A stretch of 63,883 nt of DNA, filler included, from Olpidium bornovanus S191 (Eukaryota > Fungi > Olpidiomycota): assembly GCA_017911155.1 (NCBI GenBank). It is 32 parts of 32 records of this genome, joined end to end, with 100 filler letters (N's around TTAATTAATTAA, not from the genome) between each part and the next. Parts side by side here need not be neighbours in the genome. Positions count along the whole stretch, not along the records: positions 12,024 to 14,011 come from JAEFCI010004496.1; 31 more parts are not named here. One strand, given 5' to 3'. The notes under the pieces were generated by a model, which did no database searches, was not told where the DNA came from, and worked only from the letters and a program-made list of their open reading frames with translations. This document shows, piece after piece, positions 11,655 to 14,111 of this stretch. Each line of letters starts with the position of its first letter. Position 1 is the first letter of the stretch. Made by a program: the position numbers and the translations under genes.

Positions 11655-12227
11655 GACGCCGGCCGTTGCCCCAGATGTGTTTCAAACAGGTCGCACCGAA
11701 CCCCGGGCTGTACGGACTCCGAAAAAATGAAACACAGTTGTTTTGCACAGTGTCGAGCCCAATGCGGCGTAACGAATGTTGCGCGCTGGCGTCTTGTCCG
11801 CCCGATGACGTTACGCACCGCGGCAGTTCACTGGATCCATGCCAGCAGGTTCACGGCAAAGTAATACGGCTTTCGCCTTGGCAATTATACCATTTCGGCT
11901 GCGCAAGCCGCGCGTCAGTTGGGNNNNNNNNNNNNNNNNNNNNNNNNNNNNNNNNNNNNNNNNNNNNTTAATTAATTAANNNNNNNNNNNNNNNNNNNNN
12001 NNNNNNNNNNNNNNNNNNNNNNNCAAATTGGAGTACTCGGATACAACGAAACTTCGACGCCGCGTGAGTTTGTTGAAAGTTTTCACTTGAAAAATCAGGA
12101 GCTGCGTTGCGGCCGTTCTGGTGCCGGAAAGAAAAGCGGCCATGCGAGAGTTGTGGTGCGGTTTATTTTGAAAGGTTATCTTGTAAACTGCTGCTTAAAC
12201 TCAAGGTCGATCGCCGATTATAAACAG

Positions 12228-13947
12228 GAGGCGAAGACGGAGAACACGGCTGGTCAGAGCGTCCTACGGGGGTATTTCGGAAACGAAACCTACAAGAGCT
12301 TACAAGTTACTACGGAGACCACGGCAGCCCAGGCTGTATCGATGATCCTAGAGAAAATGATGATCAAAGACTCTGCCGAAGGGTACGGGATTTTCGAGGT
12401 CGCAAAGGACGGAAGTAAGTCTGACGCAGTTCCACCGGTTGGTCGCCAATTTGCGGCAAAACGAAAGCTCACTTTTTCTTGAAATGAATGGACGCCAGTC
12501 ATGCGACATCTCCTTCCGTCCGAATCCCCTTTTGAAGTCATGCGTCATTGGCAAGGCGGGGAGACATTTATGTTCAAGAAAGTGACGTCCGGCAGAGAGG
12601 CTGAGGTAAGCGCTTGTAAGCTCTTGTTTAACTACTCGTGAAAAGTGGACGTGCGCGTGTTTGAAGCCTGCCTTGCAGCAACGTCACGACCGCGCGCCGT
12701 TTATCGTTTTACGAACAGACCTCGAAGAAGAAATTACGCTTGCCAGTCAAAAGGGCCGCGAAGCTCGCCGGGTTCTTCGGTGTCGACACAGGCGCCGATC
12801 ACGCGCAAGCGGCAACGGTGCCGCCCGCCGAGTTCAGCGAGCTTCTCAGCGTGCTGAACGCCGGAAAGGACGATCAACTGGATAAAGAGATCACCGAGAG
12901 CCGGCAGCGAACGGTGCAGGTCAGGAACAAGGGCAAAGTCTCAAAGGAAGGATGGCTGTATTTGGAGGGCGTGTGCGAAGGGAAGCCCGCGCACCTCGAA
13001 AACTGCTGGTGTCAGATCAAGAACAACGTGCTGCTCGTGCAGACCAACGTCTCCAAGAACGAGTCCGTCGCGCCCGACCGAAACAACGGCATCAGCGTCC
13101 CGCTGGACCAGTGCGTCGTGGACGGTCCGGCGCCGTCTGCGTCGCACCCGGGCAAGTTCCGGTTTACCGTGACGGCGATGCGGGGCAAGATGGAGCAGAT
13201 ATTCGTCGCGACCACGCAGGCCGACGCCGAGGCGTGGGTGAGCGTTCTCCAGGCTGCGGTGAAGAGCGCGAAGAATAACATGAGCCTCGCCGACTTCGAG
13301 TTCCACAAGGTCCTCGGTCGGGGCCAGTACGGCAAAGTGCTGTTGTGCAGCCAACACTCGACAAGCAAGGTTTACGCAGTCAAGGTGCTTGACAAAGTGG
13401 CAATGGCTTCCGACTCCGGAGTTTGCGGGGTGCCTGATAACGTGATCCTGGAGGGTATCAAGCACCCGTTCATCGTCACTTTGCACTGCGCCTTCGAAAC
13501 TGAAGAACGATTGTATATGGTCATGGTGAGGTACCGCCCGCTTTGACAAGATTTTTACATTGAAAGGGTATGGCCCGGTAACCCAGCTCTACAAACTTGG
13601 CAGGAATACGTAAACGGAGGAGAGCTGTTCTTCCACGTTAGCAAATTCGGCCGGTTTCCCGAAGTTAGAGTACAGGTCTACTGTGCGGAGATATTTTTGG
13701 CCCTGCAGTACCTTCACAAAAACGACATTGTTTACCGGTATGGAAATCTTGACGTTGTTCCTGACTTTTAATGTCGCGCGCGCGCGCGCGCGTGAAGAGA
13801 TCGGCCGTCCATCGGTTTCGGATGGACTCCTGATAATTCCCCATCTTTTTTTCTTGCAACTTTTAATTTTTCCGGCCTACAACCCGCAAAGCGACGTGAA
13901 ATTGGAAAATCTCATGCTTTCCAAAGACGGGCATCTCAAGATTGCCG
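12228..13947 (+). CDS. AGC Ser/Thr kinase with RA-like and PH domains (Akt/SGK-like), partial
   Basis: Exons 12228-12414, 12499-12605, 12719-13525, 13604-13737, 13892-13947. RA-like [28 protein letters not shown]; [18 protein letters not shown]; kinase [43 protein letters not shown]. Confidence 0.85.
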
Positions 13948-14111
13948 GTGCGCCGGGCCCCCCAGCGTTGACACGGCTCGCTTCGTTACGAGCAGCGCCC
14001 CCCCTCCCCCCNNNNNNNNNNNNNNNNNNNNNNNNNNNNNNNNNNNNNNNNNNNNTTAATTAATTAANNNNNNNNNNNNNNNNNNNNNNNNNNNNNNNNN
14101 NNNNNNNNNNN

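Follow-up and report, generated by a model that had tools for sequence, protein, structure and literature searches.

The window analysed here is a stretch of 63,883 nucleotides, filler included, joined from 32 parts of the genome of the zoosporic, root-infecting fungus Olpidium bornovanus S191 (assembly GCA_017911155.1), and all positions given below count along it. Positions 12024–14011 represent one entire contig of 1988 bp (JAEFCI010004496.1), bordered by N on both flanks, from an assembly that was generated metagenome-style from non-axenic zoospores (PMC7865070). This contig holds the middle part of a single spliced gene on the plus strand, with five homology-supported exons (A–E, Table 1) that place an RA domain, a PH domain and an Akt-like AGC kinase on one reading frame. 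All introns have GT..AG borders and lengths of 78–154 nt; the A/B and D/E junctions split the codons ATC (Ile) and CGC (Arg), respectively, and the B/C and C/D joins are in phase 0. A public protein, KAG5460908.1 (P0001 in the following), is recorded on the same contig as 'MAG: kinase-like domain-containing protein, partial [Olpidium bornovanus]'. Its four internal junctions are identical to those of the exon A–E model, and exon C is 100 % identical to its residues 142–410. The window sequence was searched exon by exon, and P0001 was the sole joined sequence used. The bounds given to this feature in a first-pass annotation, 12228 and 13947, turned out to be the acceptor side of exon A and the donor side of exon E.

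The first-pass annotation, made from the sequence alone, had seen an RA-like segment, a PH domain and an Akt/SGK-like kinase on one spliced frame and had suggested a Pfam run on the spliced model. This arrangement is confirmed, both exon by exon and in the public model, with RA, PH and Pkinase all above their cut-offs. Exon A alone matched RA_2 with 32.9 bits (cut-off 27; 7.2e-8) and RA with 25.3 bits (cut-off 21; 2.4e-5) over profile positions 4–56, while exon B matched the other half of the same domain (positions 62–90); as the two exons cover complementary halves, they provide independent support for the splice between them. Exon C yielded PH at 29.6 bits (cut-off 25.1) and Pkinase at 43.6 bits (cut-off 31.7) up to profile position 77; exon D carries Pkinase on over positions 78–121. 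The corresponding values for P0001 were 40.9 bits for RA, 43.8 for RA_2, 28.4 for PH and 121.9 for Pkinase. The glycine-rich loop (G-loop), the VAIK-type Lys and the catalytic loop RD-K-EN of the Olpidium kinase are intact. An AlphaFold2 model of the Olpidium fragment, computed with 19 relatives as alignment, gave a predicted local distance difference test (pLDDT) score of 83–93 for RA and of 75–94 for PH, the linker between them falling below 50 except for two short helices. A second model, of residues 100–828 of the complete relative P0008, likewise combined confident domains with low-confidence linkers. In a Foldseek search with the Olpidium model, full-length autoinhibited Akt1 and Akt2 were returned first (PH plus kinase), followed by the RA-PH tandems of lamellipodin, RIAM, Grb14 and Grb10 (RA plus PH).

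Table 1. Features of the Olpidium bornovanus gene on contig JAEFCI010004496.1 (positions of the window).
Feature	Position	Strand	Evidence and remarks
Possible upstream exon end (KLEYSDTTKLRRR)	12025..12063	+	Donor-like GTGAGT at 12064, phase 0 fit to exon A; uncertain, very short
Probable intron	12064..12227	+	GT..AG borders, low third-position GC, no Pfam match, unlike relatives
Exon A, N-terminal half of RA	12228..12414	+	Pfam RA_2 and RA, family alignment
RA elements in exon A	β1 VLRGYF 12261-12278; β2 TYKSLQV 12288-12308; α1 ILEKMMI 12345-12365	+	
Exon B, C-terminal half of RA	12499..12605	+	Pfam RA 62-90; family-invariant F, near-invariant W
Exon C, conserved linker, PH and kinase N-lobe	12719..13525	+	Uninterrupted 269 codons; Pfam PH at residues 74-181, Pkinase at 193-269
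Linker motif	12749..12784 (K(L/I)AxFFG core 12761-12781)	+	Conserved in relatives
PH domain	12938..13261 (β1-β2 12947-13009)	+	Pfam PH, 29.6 bits
Kinase N-lobe	13295..13525	+	G-loop GRGQYGKV 13316-13339; VAIK-type Lys in YAVKVL 13373-13390; Asp (GAT 13436-13438) at the αC-Glu position
Exon D, kinase hinge to start of catalytic loop (ends IVY-R)	13604..13737	+	Pfam Pkinase 78-121; near-invariant family columns
Exon E, AGC catalytic loop	13892..13947	+	Translation; ends before DFG at intron (GT at 13948) and contig end

The Olpidium gene does not stand alone. When exon C was searched with HMMER against 1.84 billion representative proteins, the tier below the self-match consisted of proteins of 800–1700 residues (E 1e-32 to 1e-20). 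RA, PH and Pkinase were found in this order in eight scanned proteins, the window's own model among them, with P0003 lacking a Pfam PH match and P0009 giving a weak one; a local RA hidden Markov model (HMM) together with a motif scan recognised about 27 members among the top 150 matches. They share the order RA, a linker with the motif K(L/I)AxFFG, PH and AGC kinase, and every named member, from about 20 named species, belongs to the zoosporic Holomycota. These include the chytrids Borealophlyctis, Quaeritorhiza, Geranomyces, Blyttiomyces, Dinochytrium, Irineochytrium, Powellomyces, Phlyctochytrium, Fimicolochytrium, and Nowakowskiella, the Blastocladiomycota Allomyces, Sorochytrium, and Catenaria, as well as Piromyces (Neocallimastigomycota), Caulochytrium, the aphelid Amoeboaphelidium, and Rozella allomycis, so that each zoosporic fungal lineage sampled is represented. 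Among the matches listed by word-index searches with the full-length and the RA-linker-PH sequences, only known members and generic bacterial kinases occurred. No member turned up in non-flagellated fungi, a provisional result that rests on the ranking of one exhaustive search and a look-up of names. Over the region from RA to kinase, Olpidium is 29–41 % identical to its relatives, which carry automatic database names such as 'AGC/AKT protein kinase', 'RAC-alpha/gamma serine/threonine-protein kinase', 'Sgk1', or 'hypothetical'. Judged by its domain order and by the position of its kinase inside the family clade (see below), the Olpidium gene is a member of this family. In the open-access literature (PMC and bioRxiv), no description was found of an RA-bearing Akt-like kinase, or of Akt/PKB at all, in zoosporic fungi. 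The proteins thus represent a conserved and so far unnamed, lineage-wide Akt subfamily for which we found no paper, although its sequences are already in public databases. The search of early-diverging fungi that the first-pass annotation had recommended was therefore productive, and it changes the status of the suspected novelty: the architecture is not unique to Olpidium and is already filed under Akt, RAC and Sgk names, while the family as such appears undescribed in the literature surveyed. In two members, P0046 and P0052, RA, KLAGFFG and kinase are present and the PH segment is unrecognisable in the alignment, which may reflect either a gene-model error or a true loss of PH. Chytrids with the family furthermore carry a separate, apparently Sch9-like AGC kinase, P0233 in Powellomyces (C2 plus kinase) and P0264 in Rhizophlyctis; in the tree it branches at a great distance from the RA-PH kinases, and two lineages therefore coexist in these fungi.

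The linker between RA and PH, about 80 residues long in Olpidium and up to about 130 in relatives, is itself a hallmark of the family. After RA, the K, A, F and G of K(L/I)AxFFG(V) are invariant or nearly so in 20 relatives, and the motif is followed by a conserved helix of the pattern E..EL...LN. In long members, K(L/I)AxFFG occurs once more some 40 residues ahead of RA, so that the two copies bracket the domain (residues 790 and 954 in P0002, 114 and 272 in P0008); in Olpidium, the additional copy would be situated off the contig. The motif is without a Pfam model, and AlphaFold2 predicts it as a short low-confidence helix. Speculatively, it may constitute a basic-hydrophobic element for binding a membrane or a partner. 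An interpretation as an FFAT-like or hydrophobic-motif-like element was set aside on sequence pattern alone, given the basic flanks and the G-V that follows FF. Full-length relatives extend by another 150–1000 residues N-terminal to RA. In long members this extension amounts to 500–1000 residues; within it, P0002, P0006, P0018 and P0153 show weak extra RA HMM matches (E 0.01–0.06) some 300–500 residues upstream of RA, and P0009 and P0019 seem, by eye, to hold two further ubiquitin-like segments, where Pfam reports nothing at E<0.01.

The kinase points to Akt. For the Olpidium N-lobe, the best matches among solved structures were Akt2 and Akt1 (58–59 bits), with SGK1 and PKC also among the best, while the kinase domain of a complete member scored 278–287 bits to Akt1/2 as compared to about 255 bits to PKC-theta, SGK1 and RSK2. 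Maximum-likelihood trees of kinase domains were built from the family and the 115 nearest AGC kinases, including PH-bearing PKBs of animals, dictyostelids and protists, the chytrid C2-kinase, and PX-kinases. The family formed one clade in the 135-row tree and was recovered with a support of 100/96 in a 72-row tree (LG+C20+F+G4), where animal Akt received 100/100 and the split between family plus animal Akt on one side and 39 other AGC kinases on the other 99/96. Olpidium, represented by its partial kinase, is placed within the family clade (98), with Rozella at the base, in line with the species tree. The PH domain tells the same story: among all solved chains, the family PH profile matched the Akt1 PH best (2e-11), with those of the Grb and RIAM adaptors absent from the top 60, and two of the best non-family matches of the exhaustive exon C search are animal Akt-type proteins, from a tick (a RAC kinase) and a fish (unnamed), that align across PH and kinase. 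The PH profile and these joint matches imply that the PH-kinase unit belongs as a whole to the Akt lineage.

In the C-terminal part of the kinase, where Olpidium cannot contribute since its contig ends before DFG and its activation loop and C-tail lie beyond, the relatives are variable. At the PDK1 site, which precedes the G of GT(L/P)EY by three residues, about half of them have S or T and the rest Glu or a hydrophobic residue (Glu in P0004, P0010, P0016 and P0052; hydrophobic in P0008, P0017 and P0030), often with acidic runs ahead of it. This hints that some members may bypass activation-loop phosphorylation. The C-tail reads FD.xFFDxxFT, often followed by a turn-motif-like (L/I)(T/S)P site, and several relatives end in a hydrophobic-motif-like φ-x-x-F-S-φ (φ, hydrophobic), other models stopping earlier.

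The PH domain has lost arginines of the Akt lipid site. Akt1 binds phosphatidylinositol 3,4,5-trisphosphate (PIP3) through K14, R23 and R25. In an alignment to the Akt1 PH, Olpidium has L, E and C in these columns, and its β1-β2 region (12947–13009) carries a net charge of −3, which bears out the earlier statement that this region is acidic and lacks the basic residues Akt uses for PIP3. Across 18 relatives, the R25 column is never basic; chytrid members do show Lys clusters in the β1-β2 loop. Class I and II phosphoinositide 3-kinase (PI3K) catalytic subunits are reported to be absent from all Fungi (Philippon et al., PMC4617754), and without class I PI3K a fungal Akt would have no PIP3 to read.

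As for RA, the family profile matched a whole range of solved RA domains, with Grb14 (4K81, RA-PH) at 6.7e-5 and furthermore Grb7, afadin, RASSF5, Grb10, RGL, RIAM, Epac2, and RalGDS; a single-sequence search gave only a weak match (RASSF5, E 0.12). Grb14 binds Ras via its RA domain, and in the crystal structure of the complex Lys111 (β1) contacts Glu37, Arg120 (β2) Asp38 and Lys140 (α1) Asp33 of Ras, with Val109 in a hydrophobic cluster (PMC3742580). By profile alignment, the Olpidium counterparts of K111, R120, K140 and V109 are R (in VLRGYF), K (in TYKSLQV), K (in ILEKMMI) and V, respectively, and throughout the family the β1 R/K and the α1 K/R are nearly always kept. These features fit the binding of a Ras-family guanosine triphosphatase (GTPase), without indicating which one.

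Upstream of exon A, the contig is more difficult to interpret. The reading frame that begins at 12024 shows no stop between the start of the contig and the RA domain, and the public model starts at 12099, reading 12099–12227 as its first 43 residues (ELRCGRSG…ADYKQ). However, the share of G and C at third codon positions (third-position GC), 0.57–0.80 in the five supported exons, is 0.48 in 12066–12227 and 0.51 in 12099–12227, and the segment 12064–12227, which closes with an AG acceptor at 12226–12227, has neither a Pfam match nor any likeness to relatives. For these reasons the segment is probably an intron, and the first 43 residues of KAG5460908.1 are probably intron read-through. An HMM of the pre-RA region of the family gave no significant match to the 5' part of the contig in any frame. 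The stretch 12024–12062 begins with QIGVLGY, whose faint likeness to a degenerate upstream motif of some relatives (KVAKLLGV in P0011) is too short and weak to build upon. Two antisense open reading frames of 202 and 118 residues had no Pfam match. Repeats in this piece are limited to a (CG)9 microsatellite in the intron between D and E (13775–13792) and a trivial 10-mer located at the B/C donor. The 3' end of the contig (13948–14011) is rich in GC (0.77) and in C-runs, which may explain the break in the assembly.

Taken together, we favor the view, with a probability of roughly 0.55, that the family is the fungal-side counterpart of Akt, in which the input has moved from PIP3 to a Ras-family GTPase that acts via RA. 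The inference of the first-pass annotation, membrane recruitment by Ras/Rap-GTP rather than PIP3, is accordingly plausible. In such a scheme, an Akt-lineage kinase would no longer read PIP3, in a lineage reported to be devoid of class I PI3K. Instead, a Ras-family GTPase (Ras or Rap), loaded with guanosine triphosphate (GTP), would bind RA and thereby either recruit the kinase to the membrane or release it from PH-mediated autoinhibition, the latter step being drawn by analogy with Akt. PH, and possibly the KLAxFFG helices, might add weak and unspecific membrane affinity or contribute to autoinhibition. The usual activating phosphorylations of AGC kinases would complete activation where the sites are kept, and they probably still apply, as many relatives retain the activation-loop Ser/Thr and a hydrophobic-motif-like C-tail.

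Several observations weigh against this reading. Among solved structures, the RA profile finds its single best match in a Dictyostelium MyTH4-FERM myosin, whose F1 lobe is no Ras binder, and the F1 lobe of Myosin-X scores as well. At the β2 contact, most chytrid members have T, S, L or I, and a basic residue is confined to Olpidium, the aphelid and some few environmental members. Basic residues persist in some members at the K14 and R23 columns as well as within the β1-β2 loop, so that acidic lipids might still be bound. The Olpidium kinase itself has Asp at the αC-Glu position, immediately preceded by Pro; each of the 19 aligned relatives has Glu here. The predicted template modelling scores of 0.36 (Olpidium) and 0.47 (P0008) render the inter-domain geometry of the AlphaFold2 models unreliable. 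Finally, the trees contain no labelled PKA, PDK1, PKC, S6K or Ypk1 and are unrooted, so that a placement as sister of animal Akt depends on the root, which likely lies among the other AGC kinases and would then make the family this sister.

The most serious alternative, albeit a doubtful one, is that RA is a ubiquitin-fold module that does not bind Ras-family GTPases at all and serves as an intramolecular regulator or docks another partner, as FERM F1 lobes do, the kinase being run by PDK1/TORC2 phosphorylation or by the long N-terminal regions. Many RA-annotated domains are not GTPase binders, and the myosin matches, the poorly kept β2 residue and a weak Pfam FERM_f0 match on exon A all lean in this direction. 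They have to be set against Pfam scores for RA and RA_2 above the curated cut-offs, seven different Ras/Rap-binding RA domains that match the profile, and the near family-wide retention of basic β1 and α1 residues, with Olpidium being basic at all three contacts.

Rather unlikely is a second scenario in which PH is still the main membrane targeter, via a non-canonical site for other acidic lipids such as phosphatidylinositol 4,5-bisphosphate (PI(4,5)P2), phosphatidylinositol 3-phosphate or phosphatidylserine, and RA adds coincidence detection as in RIAM. RIAM binds Rap1 through RA, and RA-PH tandems of its type are described as dual detectors of Rap1 and PI(4,5)P2 (PMC3471229). The Lys clusters in the chytrid β1-β2 loops, the members with basic K14 and R23 columns and the basic-hydrophobic nature of the flanking KLAxFFG motifs would suit such a mode of targeting, which is difficult to reconcile with an R25 column that is never basic in the family and, in Olpidium, with a β1-β2 region of net charge −3 and no basic residue in any of the three Akt columns.

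It is, moreover, highly improbable that the Olpidium copy is decaying or catalytically impaired, i.e., an incipient pseudokinase moving towards the loss observed in terrestrial fungi. The Asp at the αC position could weaken catalysis by affecting the Lys-Glu salt bridge, and no zoosporic fungus is more closely related to the non-flagellated fungi than Olpidium (PMC7865070); yet the change from Glu to Asp is conservative and could also be an assembly error, no exon is interrupted by a stop, the splice sites are intact, third-position GC is high, and the G-loop, VAIK-type Lys and catalytic loop are preserved. An artefact, either two adjacent genes fused by prediction or a mis-assembled metagenomic contig, is effectively refuted: the contig is short and stems from a metagenome-style assembly of non-axenic zoospores (PMC7865070), and the N-terminus of the public model is probably intron read-through, but linker, PH and N-lobe share one uninterrupted exon of 269 codons, the RA exons join it in phase, the KLAGFFG that follows RA in all relatives stands at its start, and the same domain order recurs in more than 20 independent genomes.

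Returning to a GTPase-gated counterpart of Akt, an evolutionary scenario can be sketched, which we put forward as a tentative proposal only. The common ancestor of Fungi, rozellids and aphelids may have inherited the opisthokont Akt; after the loss of class I PI3K, RA would have been gained while the PH pocket decayed, with the paired KLAxFFG motifs as a new membrane- or partner-binding element. Such a 'Ras-gated Akt' would have been kept only together with swimming or crawling zoospores and lost along with the flagellum in terrestrial fungi. Within this scenario, retention in zoosporic lineages alone suggests a role in zoospore motility, chemotaxis or encystment signaling.

Fungal signaling has usually been described from yeasts, in which class I PI3K does not occur and the place of the absent Akt is taken by Sch9 and Ypk1. 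The present family indicates that the flagellated fungal lineages, up to and including Olpidium, keep an Akt-lineage kinase with a different front end. If RA indeed binds Ras or Rap, the family would represent a natural PI3K-independent, Ras-gated Akt, and it would become testable how PH-kinase autoinhibition of Akt is controlled without PIP3, and which signaling modules vanished with the zoospore when fungi moved onto land. Powellomyces and Geranomyces, which carry the gene, belong to the same order as Spizellomyces punctatus, a transformable chytrid (PMC7213984).

Among known systems, Akt/PKB is closest, with an Akt-type PH directly N-terminal to the kinase and a catalytic loop nearly identical to that of Olpidium. 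However, Akt comprises PH, kinase and C-tail, whereas the family places RA and the K(L/I)AxFFG linker before PH and, in relatives, adds long N-terminal extensions; the PIP3-binding residues are missing (the R25 column family-wide, K14, R23 and R25 in Olpidium), the activation-loop phospho-site residue is variable in relatives, and the hydrophobic motif is only partly canonical. The adaptors Grb7/10/14 and the MRL proteins (RIAM, lamellipodin) similarly have RA followed by PH, and the RA profile match to Grb14, Grb7, Grb10 and RIAM takes in an ER..E..V..W segment after the RA core. An Atlas feature search likewise returned Grb10 and RAPH1 as nearest, at scores of ≤0.85 that offer leads only. 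In contrast to these adaptors, the linker between RA and PH is long and predicted to be mostly disordered, so that the models speak neither for nor against a packed RA-PH unit, the PH is nearer to that of Akt than to those of Grb or MRL, and it is followed by a kinase instead of SH2/BPS or proline-rich regions; Pfam scans of 14 family members revealed no BPS, SH2, coiled-coil or proline-rich partner regions. Raf (RBD-C1-kinase) and the fungal Ste11/Byr2, the latter described as RBD/RA plus kinase (PMC3564526), resemble the family in having a ubiquitin-fold domain of the Ras-binding type N-terminal to a Ser/Thr kinase. They are, however, mitogen-activated protein kinase kinase kinases of the tyrosine kinase-like (TKL) and STE groups and lack PH, whereas the Olpidium family belongs to the AGC kinases of the Akt lineage. 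In Raf and Ste11/Byr2, Ras-GTP recruits or de-represses the kinase. A domain of the Ras-binding type directly before PH also occurs, likened here by architecture alone, on two regulators of Akt. One is Sin1/Avo1 (CRIM-RBD-PH), a component of the Akt pathway. The other, PHLPP, is described as an RA-PH-LRR-PP2C protein of the same pathway (PMC12002173). In both cases the RA/RBD-PH pair sits on a regulator of Akt, whereas in the Olpidium family it is found on the kinase itself.

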